Shown here piece by piece: positions 16,400 through 56,330 of a DNA stretch of 64,000 bases (position 1 is its first letter; each line of letters begins with the position of its first letter). Made by a program: the position numbers and the translations under genes. Source of the DNA: Dicyema japonicum. Taxonomy: Eukaryota > Animalia > Dicyemida. The stretch covers positions 271,445 through 335,444 of the forward strand of contig RDEW01000048.1 in NCBI GenBank assembly GCA_011109175.1. Direction: 5' to 3'. The notes below the pieces were generated by a model. The model saw only the letters and a list, made by a program, of their open reading frames with translations, was not told the DNA's origin and searched no databases.

Positions 16400-17877
16400 T
16401 TTCTTGTAAGCGGACAGTCGCATCGTGGACAGACTGGTCTCTTAATGTGATGATTACATAATCAGTATATGCGAGAACAATGTATTATTGGTGGTATATC
16501 GTTCATCTAAGGACTTGGAAATGGATTATTAATACCCATACAAAAACCGAACAAATCAAAAGGACCAGTAGAAAATCTCCGCTCGATAATACTTCTGAAT
16601 TCGATACGCAAGGTGCTGGCAAACATTGCACTAAGCCGGATAAAGGGTATGGCGAATCTATACCTACCAGCAAGTCAAAGTGGGTTCCGAGAAGGGAGGT
16701 CTACGGCAGACATTGTATGGAGCCACAGATGGCGCTGCGCAACGCACCAAAGATTCAAGAGCGCAACAACCGTGTTGGGAATAGATCTCTCCAGAGCTTT
16801 CGACTCAATAAACAGACAGAAACTGATGAATGTGCTTGAGCAAATATTGGATGAATCGTCGGTTAGGATAATCAGACTACTACTTGCGAACACAAGACTA
16901 TCTGTGAGGACAGAAGGAGCAACTTCCCGCAGTTTCAAAACAACGATTGGGACACCCCAGGGTGATTCCCTCTCCCCTTTACTATTCACCATATACCTTG
17001 AATCTGCACTCCGCGACCTCCGTAAATGCTATATAGGAGACATAGAAGAGACATCTTATGCGGATGATGTGGATTTTGTATCACGGGATGTGACCGCACT
17101 CCAACACCTGCTAGAAAATGCACCTGCGGAGCTTGAGAAATGGTTTCTCAGCGTAAATGTTAACAAAACTGAAATTACGGAAATCAAAAGAGAAGACGAT
17201 ATTACTCAAGAAAGATGGAGACGTACTAATAAGCTCGGCTCTCTACTAGGAGACGCTGAAGATGTACTGAGGAGGAAAACACTGGCAAATGCGGCAATGG
17301 CTAAACTGAAGAAAGGATGGCTAAGGGCCAAAGGACTTGGAATTGACATCAGATGCAGGCTTTACAACGCGTTTGTGAAACCGATCCTACTGTATAACGC
17401 TGGGACATGGGGAAGTTCCTTCAACGAACTATTGAAACTGGATTCGTTCCATAGAAGGCAACTAAGAAGCTTACTCGGAATGGAGTGGCCACGTAGAATA
17501 TCAACCACTGGTATCTACAAAAGTGTATGTGTACATCAGCAAGGATGTGATAGATGCCCGGTGGAGGCTATTTGGGCATGTACTAAGAATGAACCCGGAC
17601 GCACCCGCTAACAAAGCGATGGAAGATTACTTTGACAGATGCGAAAAACCCTTCCGCGGACGACCTAGATCGACACTTCCGACAGCCCTAAACAAAGACT
17701 TAAATCGTGTGAGAAAAAATTTAAAGACGGGAGACGACCTGGACGAATTGAGATCACTCGCATTCGACAGAGGAAGATGGAAAAGACTAACTATAAATAT
17801 TGTTTCTTTGAGTGTTGCACATGCGGGGCTATAATCATTATGGCTTTCGTGAAAGTGCTTTAATAATAATAATAATA
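16400..17877 (+). mobile_element. RTE-like LINE, 5'-truncated, with intact 3' end
   Basis: RT motifs SGFREGRST, GIDLSRAFD, GTPQGDSLSP and YADD. C-terminal RWRLFGHVLR..RGRPR. (TAA)n tail at 17861-17877. Confidence 0.9.
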
Positions 17878-20203: not shown

Positions 20204-23510
<3,307 letters not shown>

Positions 23511-23785
23511 CTATAACATTCATTTATTAACACATAGAGTTTTGTTCTATTCTTACTTCACATAAGACCCTCTACCCATTTTGTATTATCACAAATTCTG
23601 TTCGGATTACTACAACCGATTAAAAGTTTACTTATATTATTTGGCCGCAAATGGGACTAGAGTGAAAATATTGACAAAGCTGTGTTTGACCTTTTGAGAA
23701 TCATTCTGCCATCACTATATATTATGAAAAAGTCCAGGCGATTCACTATTAAGATTTCTCTCCGTATAGGATCTATAGGATCTAA

Positions 23786-33530: not shown

Positions 33531-34813
33531 TACGGTCGTTTTTGTCTCTTGTAGACAGCAGACAGAGACGTCATATTTGGTTAGATTGGTGTTTCATGTA
33601 AGGTTGTATAAGTCCTCTGCAATTAAAAGATCCCAGAGTGAACGGAGAAGTCGGTAAGGAATACGAATAAGACATAGTGTCGTCACCACCTCAACCAGAA
33701 TTAAATAAACGAACGTTTATAGAATATGGACGACATTGATTTTCAGACAAAGTTATTTATTTCAGTTGTGGATAAAAGCATAAATATTTTGGAGAGATGT
33801 TCATTAAAAATACAAAGAATATTGTTGTTGAACATTGGAGTTTATAAAAGTTTGAGGTGTTAAGGATATTGCTTTACAAAAATGTTGTCATGTGTGCAAT
33901 TAAAAAAGATGTGTAGAATACGTTTAGAAAGTAAATTTGAATCTCTGAATATTGTTATATAATGCATTGTGATAGAATAACTCAGGAATGTGGAGAATGT
34001 CGAAAACAGATATTGAGAGACTTGATGGATATCCCACAAATCAACTCTCATTAGTCAAAGAATATAAATACGACTTTTTGGCATATTTTTAGGGGACAAC
34101 CGAAAACAGAGACAACCTTGATAAAACCCGGAAGCGCGGAATAATGAAAGTTGAATGGAATAAATTATTAGAAAGGATAATAAGTAGTGAAACCGTATAA
34201 ACTAGTAAGTAGTATTAACTATCACAAGATTACCCTATCACCCATTTAAATAAGGTCACATTGTGTCATTATTATTGGTGTTTATAATGAGATTAAATAT
34301 ATTAAGCTTTTCTACTGAGATGGATATACAATATGGAATTATGTTAAGGAGATTCCATCAACAGCTCATAAAGTCTATAGGTGATGGTGGAAACTTGGTA
34401 AAAATTTAATCGAAGAATGACTTTCAAGACTTACGATTGGTAATTTTGGATATAAATCTACTTATTGGAATGAATATCACAAAGAATATTTGAAATTCTT
34501 TACAAAATTTAGTTACTCTAACCTCATTAACATGACCGATTGTCATAAAGCGTCCAGCTTAGAGTGTCGGGGCTAGTTCCTTAATGTAATTTGTGGTCCT
34601 GGTCTGGAAAAGGAACCAAGCTGTTCAGGTGAGAGGAGGACAAAATTCGTATCCATCCCATAGAAGTAAATGATTTTTGTGGAGGGAATGGTGGGTAATG
34701 AGATTAATATTAAAAAGTATAATTATTAATGATTATTAAATATTATTAATAATAAAATTATTAAAATAATAAATGCAAATATATTGAATATATTAAATTC
34801 CTTATACCCGATT

Positions 34814-35475
34814 ATGATAGATAATAATCTAACAATGAAATGTGTATTTATTGGAGATGGAGGAGTTGGAAAGACAAGTTTATTGTCAACATATGCTAAT
34901 AAGAGTTTCCCAACACAATATGTGCCAACAGTAATAATAATAATGATAAAAGGTGTTTGACAATTATACAACAACAGTGAGAATAAATTCAGGAGAACAA
35001 ACTATATCTGTAACGTGTTGTCTGTTTGACACAGCAGGACAGGAAGACTATCAAAGATTACGTAGTTTGTCATATCAAAAAACAAATGTCTTTGTAATTA
35101 CCTTCTCTTTAGTTCAACCAAATTCTTTCCATAATGTCAGGGATAAGGTAATAATTAGTATTACTTAGTGGGTGCCTGAAATAAGACCTCATTTGATTAA
35201 TAATTGTTTCATGGTTTTAGTGGGAACTCAATTGGATTTAAGGAATAACTTTATTAACGAAAAGAAACCAGTAGTCACTCATGAAATGGGAGAAAAATTG
35301 GCTAAAGAATTAAAATGTGATAAATATATGGAAACTTCTGCTTTAGAAAATGTATTCATTATTATTTAATGTTAAGAAAAATATTGGGGAGACTATGAGC
35401 CACGTTGTTGTCAATTTTGTTAACAAAATTATTATGGAACATCAAAAACCAAAGAATAAATGTAACATCATTTGA
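34814..35475 (+). CDS. Rho-family small GTPase (Cdc42/Rac-like)
   Basis: [25 protein letters not shown]|[16 protein letters not shown]|[19 protein letters not shown]|..CNII* (CAAX). Three micro-introns. Confidence 0.92.
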
Positions 35476-37799: not shown

Positions 37800-39950
37800 A
37801 CATAATTTATATCTCATTATGTTCTCAGAGTCTGCATTATTTTGGTTGAGGTGATGACGTGCCTCTCTAGCTATGTCTCAAACATGTTTTATTAGATCGT
37901 CTTCTGTATATTCCAATTTTTTCCAACCCTGTTAAGATCGTTGTTGAGGTCCACAAAAATAGTGACTGTCCCTTTCACTAACGGAGGTCTGTTCTCATTG
38001 TTGAATTATTGTTCCATTATTATTTTGGCAGTAGCATCACAGAGTCTTATTCAGAGTCTGATAGTTTGCTTATTCGGAGGGCGCATGATTTTACAGCAGA
38101 GAGCTTTAACCCTCTCATGTTGCATCGGTGCTCAATCTGCTGCACATACTCCAGGATTCTTCCTTCAGATATAGAAGATTTTAGAGATGTGGCCATCACA
38201 ATTACGTCATCCGCATAAATAAGAAGACTAGTATTAATATCCTCGGACGTGGAATACTCGCCATGAATATATTAAACAAAATAGAGCTCAATACTGAACC
38301 TTGTGGTACTCCTCTCTTGAATGATATTGCATCAGATATATATCCACACACCTTCACAAAAGATTGTCTTTCCTAAAGATAATTTCTTAACCAAATAAAT
38401 AAGTATCGTGGAACACATACTGATACAAGCTGTTTTAGCAACGCTTCACGACATACACTATCGAATAATTTTGAGATATCAAGACATATTAAGTTTATTT
38501 GCCTTTTGGAATCCCTTGCTTTCATGATTTCAGAATTTAGTAGAAAGAAACAGTCTGCACAGCCTCTTCCGGGACGAAAACCCCACTGTTCCGGAATCAG
38601 AAATTCATTCTTCTCCATATGTCTGTCCTCCCAATAATAAGAAAAATGGTTTGGGTCATCCGACGTAAGGATCACAAATCCAGATTAATTAGAAAATAAT
38701 TCTAAACGCCGTTCATCCTGCAACAACCATAAATACTATTCTTAGAATTAAGATCGCCAATTAAGATAGTATAGGGATTCTTGTTGTAGAACTCAGAGAT
38801 ATCTGTAGAACAAGTCTTAAGATTCTTGGAGTATAGACCTCAAACACTAATCCATATTCCGTCGCAACAAACGTCTATGCTTGCAAATTTACACAATACA
38901 TCACAAACGATTTTTGGATTACGAATTCGGAGGCAGTCGAAAATAAACGTTCTCGTACCAGCAACTGCTTCAGCCTTCTATAAAACGTTCACGGAATTGT
39001 ATCCAGTCATTATATTACTCTTTGCTTTTCTTAATTTCAAGGTGTCGATCTTGGAGGCCCTCACAAGTAGTGTTAGTTCATTATGCCTTTTCCTTAAGAA
39101 TCTGCCATTCACTAGCACTATTTTTAGTCTTTGCTTCAAACATTTTGGTGACCTTACTTCTTCAAACCCTGTTCAATCGAGCAGATATGGTTTAGCCGTG
39201 ATATAATATTCAATATTTTCATATTTACCTTCTCTAATAGATTGGGTGGGACTTTATTCAATTTTCGACAAAATTTTAGGTGCCTTCTTTGACGTAACTT
39301 TCCTTGCTATCCATGTCCTCTTAATATTGCCTGTCCATCGTTTTTCGTTGCTCTCCTCTGATCAGACTTTCTGGCAACTGGAAATCCACCTATCTGGTCA
39401 ATGTGAGGGCGAACCACTATTTATGAAATTCATTGTGTTCCTAGAAGTCTCTCCACATGGAGTCAGGTCGTGTTCCCCTGCGCAACTGAGAAATCTTGTC
39501 TTCTTACAGAAGGAGGATATGTGTCCATGGCAGTTGAAACATTTCTGTGGGCTTCTTCTGTACCATTTACATGTAATTAACACGTGGGCTATGTTGAAAA
39601 CAAGACGGACAAGCGATGTAGCCTCCACCCTTGATCTAGAACTTTTGCAAGAGGGAGTCTCCTATCTCCCTTGTAGAATCGACATATGCTCATGGTAGAG
39701 GAAGCTAATTACTTGATATTCATGAAGGTCGTTATCATCAACCCAAAATGGCAGATTTCTCACCACAATTTCGGACGATCTTACTCGGATTTCACTGAAG
39801 CGGTGGTTTCCAAGACCAAATGTGAAGTAGCATTCACATGTTCACAAAAGTTCCTTTTGTCCTCCTCCTTTCTGAATTTGATGCGGAAGATCCCGGAACC
39901 CTGTGGCTAAATCTATAGACCTCGTCAAGTCGAACGAGTACAACAGCTTA
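37800..39950 (-). mobile_element. I/Jockey-group LINE with ORF1 zinc knuckles and RT fragment
   Basis: ORF1 remnant PQKCFNCHGHISSFCK..CAGEH. RT EQWGFRPGRG, LDISKLFDSV and GVPQGSVLS. Confidence 0.8.
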
Positions 39951-40944
39951 GAAATTTTTATGACTTCCATATTCGATGTTACCAAATCTGTATAAATACA
40001 TTTCTAGAGTATTCAAAAGCTGGAGGGTCGTGATCATTCCGAGAAATGATGTGACGCGCTTCTCACTTAGTCTAGAAAACCCTGAATATATATTTTTACT
40101 CCTCTTGCAGGCCTTTCAGGATAGGCTTCTCTCAATAGACAATAACCGACTTTCGCGTTCAGTCACAACATAAAAATGTTTTCAAGTTATTCTTTTTTAT
40201 TTATCATTAAGGTTTCGAACATTGAATGACACTTAGTGTTAAGAGTTCACTCAAATCACGTGAGACTTTTTATCTTAGAACCACGTAACCAACTAAAAAA
40301 TGCAAAGATAGCTTGACTATCATCTAGGGGGAATTTATCAGAATGAAGAACTGTGGTTTTCTTGACCACAAGAATTCCTGTTTATCAAAAATGAACCCCT
40401 AAGTAATAAGACTAAAAACTCTTTTTAAAAACAATTACTAGATGTCTATAAATACCAATTGACCAACTACGCTGTGAATTAAAAATTATCCCATTCAGTG
40501 ACCACATCATGGTGTTTAGTATATAACGAATGGATAATACAGGACCATTCAATTCAAGGCATTTGGAACAAATAAAAAGATTATGCCTTCTCTTGTGACA
40601 AAGTTTGTATTCTTCAAACTATTCCAGAGACTGAGCTTACTCACACCAGGATTCCTACTAATTCCCTGTATTAAAAAGCTTATGTGAGGTGTTCCGTCGA
40701 ATATGTTATAAAGATCTGTAAAAATATGCGGTAATTAATTGACCTCTGACTTATGTCATATAATTGTACTTTAAGCAACATAAGTACATTGTAGTATAGT
40801 TTGTAGGCAGATATGCCAGAGGTGTTAATTTGATGAAATGTGTGAATGATTGTTGGTTGAGGTAACCATGACATATTGATTATTTGTCGTAATAATTTAA
40901 TAATAAAGTGACGATGATTAAAGGTGTATTAGTAAGAATAGTAG

Positions 40945-42252
40945 ATGGACAAAGATTGGGAAAGAAAAGCAACAGATGATGGAATTCCCTATTATGTAAT
41001 GTTAAAGACAGGTGAGTGTCAGTGGATGAACCCTCGTTTAATGGAAATAATAGCATTAAGCAGTATAAATATGAATAATATTAAGAGAAATTCAATAATG
41101 TGGTGTATTCTAGTTGGAGAATTGGAGAGAAAGTAAATTTTATATCAAAAGAGTTATCAAGTAAGAATAATATTATTGTAAGTTTCATCGTTAAAGTACT
41201 CGGAATTTATAGATTTGTTTGATTGTAATTGTTGTGAAATGGAAATAAATGAAGTGGTGGAAGTATTAACTCGAATATATGAGCATTTGGGGATTGTAAA
41301 TAGTGATTTTGTTGATAAAATATTAAATTGTGTGATACTGCTATCAGATAAAAAATCAAAAGTAAATGTTGAATGTTTAAATTTATTAATAATAATTTGT
41401 TGTGTTAGAAATATAAATATAATGCATAAAAGTATTATTATATATAATATTTAGGTATATTTAAAGCATTTACACAAAGTAATATAATGAGAGTTAATGA
41501 CTTTGATAGATTAACCAAATATCTTTATAAAATAGCTGAAATGATTGGGGAAACTGATTCTTTCAATAAATATAATAATCAATTTGGACACAATAAGACA
41601 TATCATCAATACTATATGTGGGCTAAAAAGAATAATTCTATCCTCTCTTGGTTACAATGTTTATGCCACTTATCACATAATATATCATATAATGTCACCT
41701 GTACTATTTGTGGTCGTAATCCCATTTATGCACTCATGTTTAAATGTCTTCACTGTAAAAACTACAATTTATGTAAACAATGCTGTCTTGAGGTAAAACA
41801 TCAGATAATCACATTCTATCACATCAAATTACACCACATTCTAAACATGTCACTTTTATATTCATTCATAGATATCTAATAAAATTAAACTAAAGGAGTA
41901 CTACAAAACTATCAAGAATGCTCTCTCCAAAGATAAAACTAACAAGGCACTCTTTATGACTACTTTTAATGATCTTAAATTTAATAAGTTTTTAATATTT
42001 TATATTTTAGTTATAAATTAAGACAATCCACCTGTCTTAAACTATCACAACAAACTACACTTAATAATCAAAATTATAAACTTGAAAGACAGATTAAATT
42101 ACTCAAAACACTAATTGTTCAGGTTTTATTAATAACACTAATATTAGTCACAACTTACAACACAACATGATCACAATCAATATGACTACAATCTATTAAG
42201 AATGGCTGATGATCTTGGAACATCATTGTGCAAACTTATTCAATCACTATAA
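40945..42252 (+). CDS. Miniature dystrophin-family protein (WW-EF-ZZ-coiled coil, Dp71-like)
   Basis: WW DWERKATDDGIPYYV..QWMNP; FNNVVYSSWR; EF region ..IAEMIGETDSF..SILSWL; ZZ CTICGRNPI..KCLHCKNYNLCKQC; coiled coil NQNYKLERQIKLLKTLI; C-terminus LRMADDLGTSLCKLI*. Introns include 41063-41085 and 41161-41182. One 1-nt frameshift near 41790. Confidence 0.85.
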
Positions 42253-42469
42253 CATTATTAATTCACTTACATCCTCTTTAATATTCCTTATACTTCCGAT
42301 TATTACTTCTACAACGGACAGGGATCACTTCTCCCCTTCACTTTTCAACACCCTACTGACATTCCCATAACTCACCAAATCTCATAATATTATCCGAATA
42401 TAAAAGCATTCAATCAGATAATGTTCAAAATCACCTAAATATTATGTTAAGTGACTTTAACTTAATGTT

Positions 42470-42790
42470 TATTATTATTATTATCAGCACTGCCGAGAAC
42501 ACATAAAAAAACAAAAGTCAATTAAGGTTCCCTTGTGCCGCGCCGGCCACCCTTTGCACCAATCGGATCCAAAGGCCTCTCCGTTTCGCAAGATCTCTTA
42601 GTTCATCGAGGTCATCCATTGTTTTCAACTCCCTGCCTATGGCTTTTAGGTCTTCATTTAGCGTGATAGGTAAGGTTGTTCTAGGCCTTCCTCGGAATGA
42701 TTTTGTTTTTTCCATGAAATAATGTTTCCATATCTTAAATAACTTTATCAAAAACAATTCATTTACACAACCAGTTCTTCCAAACATTTG
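42470..42790 (-). mobile_element. RTE-like LINE 3' end
   Basis: FRGRPRTTLP..DDLDELRDLA..W aligns with the 17523 ORF; (TAA)n tail. Confidence 0.8.
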
Positions 42791-50870: not shown

Positions 50871-52067
50871 ATGAATAAGGAAATAATATATTTAAATAGA
50901 AATGACATAAAGGATGGGTGAGATTAAACTAATGTTAGAGGAGTAACATTTGAGACAAGATTGGAGGATGGTAGTGTTCAGCAACTTTTTATAAGTTTGG
51001 AAGATTTATTAACATTTCGTACTGAGGATCCCGAGTATGATGATGTAATGAATATAGTTTGGTAGCAATAGAATTTGAGGAGGGTGGAGAATCAACAGGG
51101 CCAGTAATTTTATCAATAGCAAACATTCGTGACTTAATAGTGAGTAAACCAGCAATATCTGAGGAGGCAGTAATGGAAGCAGTATTTGGTAGTAAATATA
51201 AAGTTTATGTCAATGCCACTGCCAGGATCTCGTCGTCGTCCTATGTTGAATAACTCGTTGATTAGTAGTCTGCCTCCGAAACGTCCAGCGAATGCGTATG
51301 TGATATGTGATTGTAGATACACAATGTTTTACCGAAAACAGAAAAAGTCATTGAAAGGACTGACTAAACGAGAGATATCAGTTCGTTCAGGGAAGGAATG
51401 GAATGATATGGATGATTGTCAAAAGTCAGAGTTTTACAGATTAGCGGACAAGGACAGATTCAGATATGCTAAGGAAATGACTGAATACAAAAACTCTGAT
51501 TCTTACAAGGAGATTATGAAATTAAATGCACAAAACATATCAACAGGTGGAGAGACATACCATTGTGATATATGCTCTGAGACATTCTCCACTTCACATA
51601 ATCTTCATGAACATTTGATTGGACAGTACCACATGAGAAATCTATCCAGTTTTAATATTTTATATTTTTAGGTTATCTAACTATTCAAAAGGCTAAGGAT
51701 ACTGTTAATAATCTATGTCAACAAGTTGATCCTCACAATCTAGCACAGGCACTATTGAATATGTGTCCTGAGTGTAATGGTCCTCTTGATATACAGTCCT
51801 TTATTCTTACTTTTCACTCTAAATTATATCGTTCTCTTTTTTATTACTTTAGAACAACAAAATGAAATCAAATTACTCACTCATAAACTTTACGACATTA
51901 AAAACAAACGAAAGGCACTCAAAAAGGAGGCTGACGAACTTAAGGTTCACTTTCTAGTTATTTAGAAAAATAATTATAAACTCGACAATGACATTCATGC
52001 TCTCTTTCATTCTAATCTTCTTTTGGTTGAAAAAATTGATCTCTTAAAGGCTGCTCAAAATAATTAA
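50871..52067 (+). CDS. HMG-box + C2H2 zinc finger + coiled-coil protein (HMG20/BRAF35-like)
   Basis: PKRPANA|YTMF..EWNDMDDCQKSEFYRLADKDRFRYAKEMTEY; YHCDICSETF..HLIGQYH; GPLDIQSF; coiled coil; several 21-23 nt introns; stop at 52065-52067. Confidence 0.75.
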
Positions 52068-54183: not shown

Positions 54184-55548
54184 ATGTTTAGTGTGTCAAG
54201 ATTGTTGTTAACAAGTATATGTATAATAATAATAAATGAATATAAAAGAGAGATTAAAGAATTGGTAGAATGAATAAATGAAAATAGGGGGATATTGTGA
54301 TTGAGAAAGGTTATTCGTGGAAAGAGTATTCAGTAATAACAGAAGATGGATATATATTAAGATTACAAAGGATTGGAGGTAATGTAAGCAGAAAGGAATA
54401 TCCAATATTACTACAACATGGATTACTGACTAGTAGTGTTGATTGGATTGTTGGTGGTTTTGGTAATAATGTGTGTTGTATAAATAGCATATTTGTTGGT
54501 AAATGAAGGATATGACGTTTGGCTTGGTAATCTTCGTGGAAATATATATTCAGTAAATCACACAACACTGTCACCAGATGATGAGGAATATTGGAATTAT
54601 TCGTATTATTGATAAAAATAGTTAGAATTGAAGAACATGCAAAATATGATATAACAGGAATGGTAAATTATATTACAGAAAAAACTGGTAAAAGAAAAGT
54701 AATAATGATTGGCCATTCTCAGGGTGCTCTGATTAGTTTAATACAATTGTCACGTGATGTAGAATTTAGTGATAAAGTATGATATGAATATATGTAGATA
54801 TTACTATTTGTAGGATTAGCACCAGCAGTATCATTTAAGGATACAAGTGTGTATTGGTTTATTTGTCTCCATATTATAAATATTTTAATATATTGGGAAA
54901 TAAGTGGTTTCTGAAACCTCATAGAATAATTGGATTAATAGGAAGGACTATTTGTGATAGTCTATTATATAATATTTGTTTATTTATTATTGGATTATTT
55001 AATGGATTTAATACAAATAATATTGATTTAGTAATATTATATTTACATTAGACTCGTCTCCCATTGTATTTGCAATATCAGCCATCCTCAACCTCCGTCA
55101 AGAATATGATTCACTTTGCCCAAGTTTATATATTTACTATTATTAGATGATTGTCAGTAATAAACTACAATATTATGATTACAAGCATAACAACCTACAA
55201 TTATACAATCAAACAACACCACCAATCTACAATATCACCAATATTTATAATCCACTAATATTTATAGCCAGTCAGCATGATTGGTTATGTCCTGCTTATG
55301 TACTATTTATATTATTATAGAATCTCAAACAATTTACATTTCCTAATCTTTTACATTCAATCACCCTCAATCACTTTGCACATCTTGACTTTATTTTGGG
55401 AAAACATGCATTATCATTAGTTTACTCTCCTATTATTCATTTAATCAATATCTCTTATCACTACACATTTTGCTTTATGATTACTTGGGTATTCGGGACC
55501 TTTCTCCCATTTCTCATTCACCAAATCAAATATATCTGTTTCTCTTAA
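54184..55548 (+). CDS. Acid lipase family protein (LIPA/Lip3-like)
   Basis: VITEDGYIL, LLQHGLL, GYDVWLGNLRGN.YS, GHSQG, SQHDWL and FAHLDF (triad motifs); micro-introns. The first in-frame stop is 55546-55548. Confidence 0.9.
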
Positions 55549-56330
55549 TTCTTTATCCTTACTATATCCTCCCACTACAAATAGTCGTCCAAAGTATAAT
55601 GCACTACCAACATAACTACGTCTATTTGGAGTACATGTCAGGATTGACCAAACATTCTTTACTACGTCATACTTTTCTATTATATAAACACCCATCCATT
55701 CATTCTCCACCAAACATTCTCCCCCAACAGCCAACAACATATTCTCATACGATATTAGTACGTGTCCTATTCGACCCACCAACATATCACATTTCCTTAT
55801 CCATTCCTCTGATATTATGTCATATTCTATTGTCATCTCCAATGGCGGACCATTCTCATATTCTTGACCCCCTGATATGTAGATACCACCAAAGTGAAAT
55901 GCCATTCCATGATTCATTAAATTACATGGAAGAGGCTCTAATAATGACCATTTTGTATGTCCATTAATCATAATATTAGCACAATCCAACACTCTTGTCT
56001 TTTTTTCTCTCTCCTCAATCTCCCCACAAAGTAATAGTTCTGTAATACTATCAAAATCATCACTAATAGTTTGACATCCACCAGTCATCACAAATTTAGT
56101 ATCATCAATTGCAACAGCACATCCATATCTACCAGGACACACTGATATATCTGTCCTCCATAGATTATTACAGGGATTTACTATTCTTAAATATACTATG
56201 CTTGACGTTGATCTCCCAGATTTTGTCCGTCCTCCGATTATTAAAAGGGAGTTGTTTAAGTAATTTAATTCAAAATCTGTTAGATAATTCAAATGTTCGC
56301 AAATTCTCCATAATTTCCAACAAAGTGGAT
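55441..56330 (-). CDS. Kelch-repeat beta-propeller protein (upstream exons to about 56620 unresolved)
   Basis: Repeated GG..Y..W kelch units in ORF 55441-56292 (LLIIGG, FVMTGG, IYISGG, LLAVGG, LFVVGG). Confidence 0.85.

Follow-up and report, generated by a model that had tools for sequence, protein, structure and literature searches.

Is a dystrophin-like gene that begins directly at its WW domain the remainder of a giant gene, or has it always been short? This question is raised by a locus at positions 40945-42252 on the + strand of a DNA stretch of 64,000 nucleotides (contig RDEW01000048.1, positions 271,445 to 335,444; the whole stretch is called the window hereafter), whose source is probably Dicyema japonicum, one of the dicyemids, which have no true muscle cells. 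A previous reading of the letters of this stretch, called here the sequence-only reading, had proposed that the dystrophin locus of a probably muscle-less parasite, a guess with which this source agrees, had collapsed to a Dp71-like scaffold, a natural minimal dystrophin. We found that the locus is an intact, compact, stand-alone gene of the dystrophin/dystrotelin/dystrobrevin superfamily. It is a new and very reduced member of this known superfamily, and the comparison with its relatives favours descent from a short paralogue, while a collapse is possible.

Gene model, read support and domain content

The gene consists of seven exons separated by six GT-AG introns of 22-25 nucleotides (nt), and its predicted product of 389 amino acids has, in this order, a WW domain, an EF-hand region, a ZZ finger, one coiled-coil helix and an amphipathic C-terminus. 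The ATG at 40945 is preceded by in-frame stops at codons -1, -2, -4 and -5, the protein starts four residues before the first WW tryptophan (residue 5), and the stop codon TAA is located at 42250-42252. Exon lengths add up to 1169 nt in the window, and one G supported by sequencing reads brings them to 1170 nt, corresponding to 389 codons and a stop; the coordinates and the length of roughly 390 amino acids in the sequence-only reading were thus exact. The exons and introns are listed below, and the numbers in brackets are place and phase of introns in genes of the annelid Ridgeia piscesae.

40945-41062, + strand: exon 1, start codon and complete WW domain; ends in phase 1
41063-41085, + strand: intron 1, 23 nt, GT..AG; place and phase of Ridgeia introns (44,1) and (319,1)
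41086-41160, + strand: exon 2, first helix of the EF-hand region with the motif NNV.YS.WR; from tblastn and Pfam EF-hand_2
41161-41182, + strand: intron 2, 22 nt, GT..AG; place and phase of Ridgeia introns (69,1) and (344,1)
41183-41431, + strand: exon 3, probable remainder of the first EF-hand pair; flanked by two conserved introns
41432-41454, + strand: intron 3, 23 nt, GT..AG; place and phase of Ridgeia introns (171,1) and (441,1)
41455-41848, + strand: exon 4, second EF-hand pair and ZZ finger; in frame only with an extra G behind 41791
41849-41871, + strand: intron 4, 23 nt, GT..AG; place and phase of Ridgeia introns (317,0) and (587,0)
41872-41987, + strand: exon 5, post-ZZ helix with the motif KTIKNALSK; from profile and alignment
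41988-42010, + strand: intron 5, 23 nt, GT..AG, phase 2; near Ridgeia introns (361,2) and (632,2), which have the same phase
42011-42122, + strand: exon 6, one coiled-coil helix, counterpart of helix 2 in the coiled coil of dystrophin
42123-42147, + strand: intron 6, 25 nt, GT..AG; place and phase of Ridgeia introns (491,0) and (810,0)
42148-42252, + strand: exon 7, amphipathic C-terminal helix (..MADDLG..L..LI) and TAA; from translation

All six introns match in place and phase introns common to both paralogues of Ridgeia piscesae (P0165 and P0193), for which exons were mapped from the genomic loci of both genes. The agreement with annelid introns is a separate line of evidence that backs both the gene model and homology. 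It does not discriminate between the paralogues, since all six occur in both Ridgeia genes; missing from the window gene are two Ridgeia introns specific to the short gene P0165 and four introns common to both genes. Exon 1 is matched in tblastn by ten dystrophin-family queries, and the frame change at intron 1 is needed by the tblastn matches of Owenia P0162 and Trichobilharzia P0278 at 41085-41156, which contain the helix NNV.[FY]S.[YW]R. Exon 6 aligns to residues 455-491 of P0165 and 774-810 of P0193 and terminates at their common phase-0 intron, and the protein's C-terminus is ..LRMADDLGTSLCKLIQSL, three residues (QSL) past the end quoted in the sequence-only reading. At a G+C content of about 27%, stops should occur roughly once in 12 codons, and chance cannot account for 389 open codons.

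The additional G concerns a one-nucleotide assembly deletion at 41791-41792: the window has GAGG, and the reads have GAGGG in every contig, at full depth, of all four public runs holding the locus, which represent one sample of one 2019 study. With this G, exon 4 continues via G-KTSDNHILSH..., where the ZZ finger obtains its HxxxH ligands, as far as the 23-nt intron. For annotators, the point of importance is that a one-nucleotide assembly error in the window falsely frameshifts the ZZ finger. The reads also show other fixed differences from the window: an additional C follows 40191, and T>C changes are found at 40202, at 40480 and, as a synonymous change in exon 6, at 42038. An early model, in which exon 1 extended to 41133 and was followed by a 79-nt intron after ..CCLE, was dropped on the basis of the extra G and the frame change at 41085, and GA-AG and other odd introns are unnecessary for the final model.

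The window has about 35% G+C and is rich in long interspersed nuclear elements (LINEs). For the Dicyema japonicum genome, the reads of which are available under PRJNA496385, the genome paper gives a mean intron length of 38 bp, 36.7% G+C and 49% repeats; among animals, comparably short introns are found only in myxobolid myxozoans (Henneguya, 29% G+C). The dicyemid genome papers and their supplements make no mention of dystrophin, dystroglycan or the relevant Pfam families, and a phmmer search of 1.84 billion representatives gave neither a self-match nor a full-length model of the window gene.

All domain searches were conducted with the stop-free exon pieces singly, not with the joined 389-amino-acid model. 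Eight such pieces map in order onto family profiles, with exon 7 mapping weakly and to the true-dystrophin profile only. Exon 4 scores 63 bits against the family profile and 27.6 bits against Pfam ZZ (PF00569; gathering score, 21.4), and its residues 7-112 align to EF-hand_3 and ZZ of family proteins. Once the G seen in the reads is included, the ZZ finger has its full set of eight zinc ligands (three CxxC, followed by HxxxH), and the motif of the W-L-x-x-[LM]-H-R type before ZZ is present in a degenerate form, WLQCLCHL. The single-stretch phmmer matches of exon 4 among the same representatives have E values from 1e-8 to 4e-5 and, per Pfam, are proteins with EF-hand_2, EF-hand_3 and ZZ, some of which also have WW; its best sequence match in PDB is dystrobrevin (9c3c chain V, E 0.0018).

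Exon 1 matches Pfam WW at 21.6 bits (E 2e-4), which is under the gathering score, and has the pattern W-x21-W-x2-P; residues 4-51 align to dystrophin in PDB (1eg3, E 0.0045). Within the WW domain itself (40957-41034), the groove residues Tyr and second Trp are kept. The sole Pfam match of exon 2 is EF-hand_2 (PF09068) at positions 9-31 with E 0.046, and phmmer against PDB with the exon 2 piece of the early model gave no match. Exon 3 is strongly diverged, is about 20 residues shorter than in relatives and has no Pfam match; it maps in order to positions 86-155 of the family profile, a score reached equally by 3 of 500 shuffles. Among 83 columns conserved in both clades compared below, 35 are kept by the window gene. 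Behind the ZZ finger, the post-ZZ helix passes directly into coiled-coil helix 2 in the alignment, where the ..HPR.GYLPVQ stretch, the stretches of DMHSRLE and DEH.LI..YC type and coiled-coil helix 1 have no counterpart. The order of WW, EF-hand region, ZZ finger and short coiled coil given in the sequence-only reading is borne out by this exon-by-exon evidence.

Short WW-first proteins and the placement of the gene

A word search with the echinoderm protein P0140 retrieved many proteins of 565-790 amino acids that start 4-25 residues before WW and carry WW, EF-hand_2, EF-hand_3 and ZZ, with no spectrin repeat. They are derived from a sponge, corals, echinoderms, hemichordates, amphioxus, annelids, a brachiopod and molluscs, and examples are Patiria miniata XP_038068197.1 (773 amino acids), Ridgeia piscesae P0165 (694 amino acids), an Ephydatia protein (565 amino acids) and proteins of Owenia and Haliotis. 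The members of this short clade are listed in the following line.

Short-clade members: P0140, P0157, P0150, P0161, P0162, P0165, P0170, P0176, P0246 and others; loci L002 and L003

In Ridgeia, the short gene P0165, which has a kinesin gene upstream on the opposite strand, and the spectrin-bearing gene P0193 are located on different contigs, and because of these separate loci the short proteins are not isoforms of a rod-bearing gene. When the short and the rod-bearing protein of Acropora were compared (A. palmata and A. digitifera, one each), 47% of residues were identical. In a maximum-likelihood (ML) tree rooted on nine dystrobrevins, support was 100/100 for dystrobrevins, 100/98 for true dystrophins, including one from a coral, and 83/84 for the short clade, whose bilaterian part (93/98) holds shark dystrotelin and two tunicate dystrotelin-like proteins. 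In this tree, the short WW-first clade is the sister of the true dystrophins and contains vertebrate dystrotelin. In the study of Jin et al. (2007), dystrotelin and DAH were described as having no WW, and the domain was proposed to have been gained together with the rod in the dystrophin branch; a review (PMC10293626, 2023) states that invertebrates have no dystrophin paralogue. The tree position of the short clade suggests, contrary to the proposal of Jin et al. (2007), that WW is older than the split between dystrophin and the short branch with dystrotelin. Proteins of the short clade are widely annotated as "dystrophin-like" and have been little discussed, and they must be considered before a short dystrophin-like gene is called collapsed.

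Two other proteins were observed in these searches. P0031, encoded at locus L001 (a Logan contig of SRR13555242), has 373 amino acids with a degenerate WW, EF-hand_2/3 and ZZ and ends soon past ZZ; no family match of exon 4 is better (E 1.2e-8), and it clusters with short proteins from molluscs. P0205 of the nemertean Tubulanus polymorphus (1018 amino acids) has spectrin, WW, EF-hand_2/3 and ZZ and groups with annelid true dystrophin, while the dystrophin complex was reported to be absent from Nemertea (PMC10293626, 2023).

On balance, we regard the window gene as probably the dicyemid ortholog of this ancient, natively short WW-first sister gene of dystrophin, on the basis of the following comparisons. 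Its protein starts with MDKDW, as compared with MDKLW and MDKRW in asteroid short proteins. The WW signature GIPYY, QW fits the short clade (NGIPYY, TQW) and not the true dystrophins (NKVPYY, CW), and the post-ZZ motif KTIKNALSK fits KTIRN.LSKKH of bilaterian short-clade proteins and not KNKF.SKRYF of true dystrophins. Against profiles constructed from 17 sequences for each clade, exon 1 scored 29 bits with the short clade and 19-20 bits with true dystrophins, and exon 5 scored 7-8 bits and -1 to -2 bits, respectively; the sums of 75.8 and 60.8 bits (83.8 and 69.8 in an earlier comparison) are about 15 bits in favour of the short clade. Of 12 diagnostic columns, in which both clades are conserved with different residues, five match the short clade and one matches true dystrophin. 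Under free ML, the exon pieces E1 and E4a fell inside the short clade, and none of the three pieces tested (E1, E3 and E4a) fell in dystrobrevins; in the whole-library search, the best family matches were mostly short-clade or dystrotelin-like. If the gene has this origin, its WW-first architecture would have been inherited from the short clade, not made by collapse of a giant gene, and the dicyemid copy would have shrunk further behind ZZ by losing the long linker, the helices of syntrophin-binding type and coiled-coil helix 1.

The alternative that survives best is an ortholog of true dystrophin that lost its actin-binding domain and spectrin rod and obtained a new start just before WW; this is possible, but we think it the less likely course of events. 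A natural truncation is on record in Ciona, whose genome is streamlined: its dystrophin has 802 amino acids, only two spectrin repeats and a C-terminus that is degenerate (Jin et al., 2007). With this precedent a collapse is conceivable, and the dicyemid gene would then be a more extreme case of such streamlining. In tblastn, the top score on E4 came from a flatworm dystrophin (56.6 bits), and the stretch IVN..VD..LN in E3 resembles LVNVP.CVD..LNW of true dystrophins. Truncation, however, requires both the loss of about 3000 residues and a new start exactly where the short clade starts, and the WW signature, the post-ZZ motif and the summed profiles given above match the short clade instead, while the post-ZZ hallmarks of true dystrophin, ..HPR.GYLPVQ and the two syntrophin-binding helices, are absent.

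Several observations weigh against the origin from the short paralogue or against the protein predicted for it. E3 scores 6.6 bits with the true-dystrophin profile and -1.1 bits with the short-clade profile, E2 also scores higher with the former, and ML puts E3 beside the true dystrophins, without support. At the C-terminus, NLLRMADDLG resembles the true-dystrophin N.G.LFHMA..G more than the ending of the short clade; the sequence-only reading had taken MADDLG as the ancestral dystrophin C-terminus, which it does resemble, but the feature is not specific to dystrophin, as short-clade proteins and shark dystrotelin, like true dystrophins, have an amphipathic C-terminus of the exon 7 type. Approximately unbiased (AU) tests did not reject a forced grouping of true dystrophins with E4a (delta lnL 1.16, p 0.46) or with E1 (delta lnL -0.89, p 0.55), nor one of the short clade with E3 (p 0.48). 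The window gene sits on a very long branch, and profile scoring leans towards whichever family varies more, here the short clade. In WW domains that bind PPxY, such as those in the structures of YAP and dystrophin, His, Gln and Thr line the Tyr pocket and contact the ligand; in the window gene, these positions are Leu, Gly and Cys, and the altered pocket makes binding of the dystroglycan type doubtful. None of the six introns is spliced out in the contigs of the four runs, which are DNA-like, and none of the public runs holding the locus is recorded as RNA. Schistosomes reportedly have no third paralogue (Jin et al., 2007), and should dicyemids be relatives of flatworms, loss of the short gene may date back to an ancestor of theirs.

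A polarised count of synapomorphies with dystrobrevins as outgroup had too few usable columns. Considering the parsimony of architecture together with these mixed signals, the short-paralogue origin is favoured over a truncated true dystrophin. What stands of the proposed minimal dystrophin is the short stand-alone gene beginning at WW; a collapse is unnecessary for explaining it, because a natively short paralogue exists from sponges to deuterostomes and spiralians. The phylogenetic check asked for by the sequence-only reading gave a mixed picture, with E1 and E4a in the short clade, E3 near the true dystrophins and nothing rejected by AU.

Surroundings of the gene and remaining alternatives

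Within the window, the gene stands alone. It is located in a single-copy block at about 39900-42407, and contig depth shows high-copy repeats at 38400-39900, with a summed depth 10-400 times that of the gene, and at 42408-42741. Neighbouring features on the 5' side are as follows.

39900-40944, no strand: single-copy 5' spacer; unique depth, open reading frames (ORFs) without Pfam match, no tblastn match
34733-35366, + strand: Ras-family small GTPase gene with three exons; Pfam Ras positions 1-32, 34-92 and 93-147

The sequence-only reading had noted an opposite-strand ORF and LINE debris upstream and no evident actin-binding or spectrin-repeat exons, and our results agree. Two minus-strand ORFs overlap the start of the gene (40683-41056) and have no Pfam match, the 38400-39900 repeat follows, and LINE pieces are found further upstream of the GTPase gene. 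No CH or spectrin signal was detected by tblastn and Pfam in the 41 kb upstream within the window, and tblastn with a 2229-amino-acid flatworm dystrophin and six spectrin-bearing dystrophins gave matches at the 40945-41950 locus only.

These data bear on the idea that the locus is the 3' part of a larger gene, whose upstream exons beyond the repeats or the window are spliced to an acceptor near 40944. An AG directly precedes the ATG (..TAGTAG before ATG), the 5' end was read from DNA, and the window spans only 41 kb upstream; nevertheless, we consider this idea very improbable. Introns have 22-25 nt here and a mean of 38 bp in the genome, and a multi-kb intron across LINE debris and a gene would be exceptional. 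Two in-frame stops stand directly before the ATG, the upstream sequence has no likeness in tblastn to the 2229-amino-acid dystrophin or to spectrin-bearing queries, and Pfam matches none of the + strand ORFs from 35.9 to 40.7 kb. The GTPase gene, which is complete, unrelated, on the same strand and 5.6 kb upstream, intervenes and bounds the locus.

A decaying or non-functional remnant, with selection relaxed in an animal without muscle or basement membrane, is hardly to be expected: few of the doubly conserved columns are kept (35 of 83), E3 has no Pfam match, WW pocket residues are lost and the window sequence is frameshifted at 41791, but the frameshift is an assembly error with the extra G in all reads, 389 codons stay open in a G+C-poor sequence, all six introns keep GT..AG and the correct phase, the eight zinc ligands and both WW tryptophans are kept, and high divergence is general among dicyemid genes (Zverkov et al., 2019).

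Other features of the window were observed in passing. Summed contig depth at the 42408-42741 and 38400-39900 repeats reaches 200,000-360,000, compared with about 760 for the gene, and at the former repeat there is an ORF with an RTE-like C-terminal tail (42518-42787, - strand), resembling an ORF at 17466-17831. A gene for a P-type ATPase like Na/K-ATPase alpha, with many micro-introns, lies at 20372-23560 (+ strand; read from translations only), and the next recognisable genes downstream are an ORF with an HMG box and a C2H2 finger at 51186-51668 (+ strand) and a Kelch-repeat ORF at 55441-56289 (- strand).

Possible function and comparison with known systems

Expression, binding partners and function of the protein are inferred here from the known family. 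Since it has no CH domains and no rod, the protein should be unable to link actin itself, and it would be a small sub-membrane adaptor, as has been proposed for Dp71, dystrotelin and DAH. The coiled coil of dystrophin pairs with dystrobrevin, and the remaining coiled-coil helix could pair with a partner of the same superfamily. The WW-EF-ZZ block could dock on the proline-rich cytoplasmic tail of a membrane protein, like dystrophin on beta-dystroglycan; in dystrophin, it is the unit extending from WW to ZZ that binds dystroglycan (review). Because of the changed WW pocket and the missing syntrophin-type helices and helix 1, the ligand of this block may be other than a canonical PPxY tail.

Dicyemids have kept troponin and other contractile genes, although they have no true muscle cells (Zverkov et al., 2019). 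An intact dystrophin-family scaffold that is still under selection in an extremely reduced animal without muscle agrees with a core function of the family that is not bound to muscle. With 389 amino acids, the protein is the shortest member from WW to the C-terminus in these searches, and it marks the rod, the linker, the syntrophin-type helices and one coiled-coil helix as dispensable parts. A bolder view, which we regard as speculative and would not expect to hold, is that it is the sole superfamily member left in an animal of about 30 cells without muscle or basement membrane, and, irrespective of the paralogue from which it descends, the smallest natural WW-EF-ZZ-coiled-coil core kept by selection. 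If this is true, the gene defines the parts of the dystrophin C-terminal scaffold that a function independent of muscle and matrix requires, and the scaffold function survives the loss of canonical PPxY-pocket residues.

Among known systems, Dp71 was the model named in the sequence-only reading. It likewise consists of the cysteine-rich (EF/ZZ) and C-terminal parts with no actin-binding domain or rod, it has non-muscle expression, and an amphipathic helix of this kind closes its exon-78-skipped form. However, Dp71 is an internal-promoter isoform of a giant gene, while the window gene is stand-alone, with no larger dystrophin gene around the locus within the window. With its promoter situated between the two WW exons, Dp71 has no complete WW (Jin et al., 2007), whereas WW is whole here; Dp71 keeps the syntrophin-binding sites and both coiled-coil helices, whereas the window protein has neither the syntrophin-binding helices nor helix 1. 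For these reasons Dp71 is a poor template and the label "Dp71-like" is inexact.

Ascidian dystrophin (802 amino acids in Ciona intestinalis and 842 in C. savignyi; Jin et al., 2007) shares natural truncation and a degenerate region behind ZZ. It differs in having two spectrin repeats and a single exon, as compared with no repeat and seven exons in the window gene, and it is a true dystrophin, which the window protein may not be. Vertebrate dystrotelin and Drosophila DAH, which have about 640-670 amino acids, evolve fast and have no known actin link (Jin et al., 2007), share EF-hands, ZZ and a poorly constrained coiled-coil C-terminus, but the described dystrotelins and DAH have no WW. Dystrobrevin shares EF-hand_3, ZZ, a coiled coil and probably EF-hand_2, but it has no WW and forms a separate clade (100/100).

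The short WW-first proteins have in common with the window protein a stand-alone gene with a start just before WW and no CH domain or spectrin repeat, the order of WW, EF-hand_2 (probable in the window protein), EF-hand_3, ZZ, coiled coil and amphipathic C-terminus, the places and phases of introns, and the GIPYY and K-T-I-x-N-x-L-S-K signatures. They are longer, with 565-790 amino acids as compared with 389. The window gene, unlike theirs, has lost the WW-internal intron and several others, and its product is far more diverged and has neither the long low-complexity linker nor coiled-coil helix 1.

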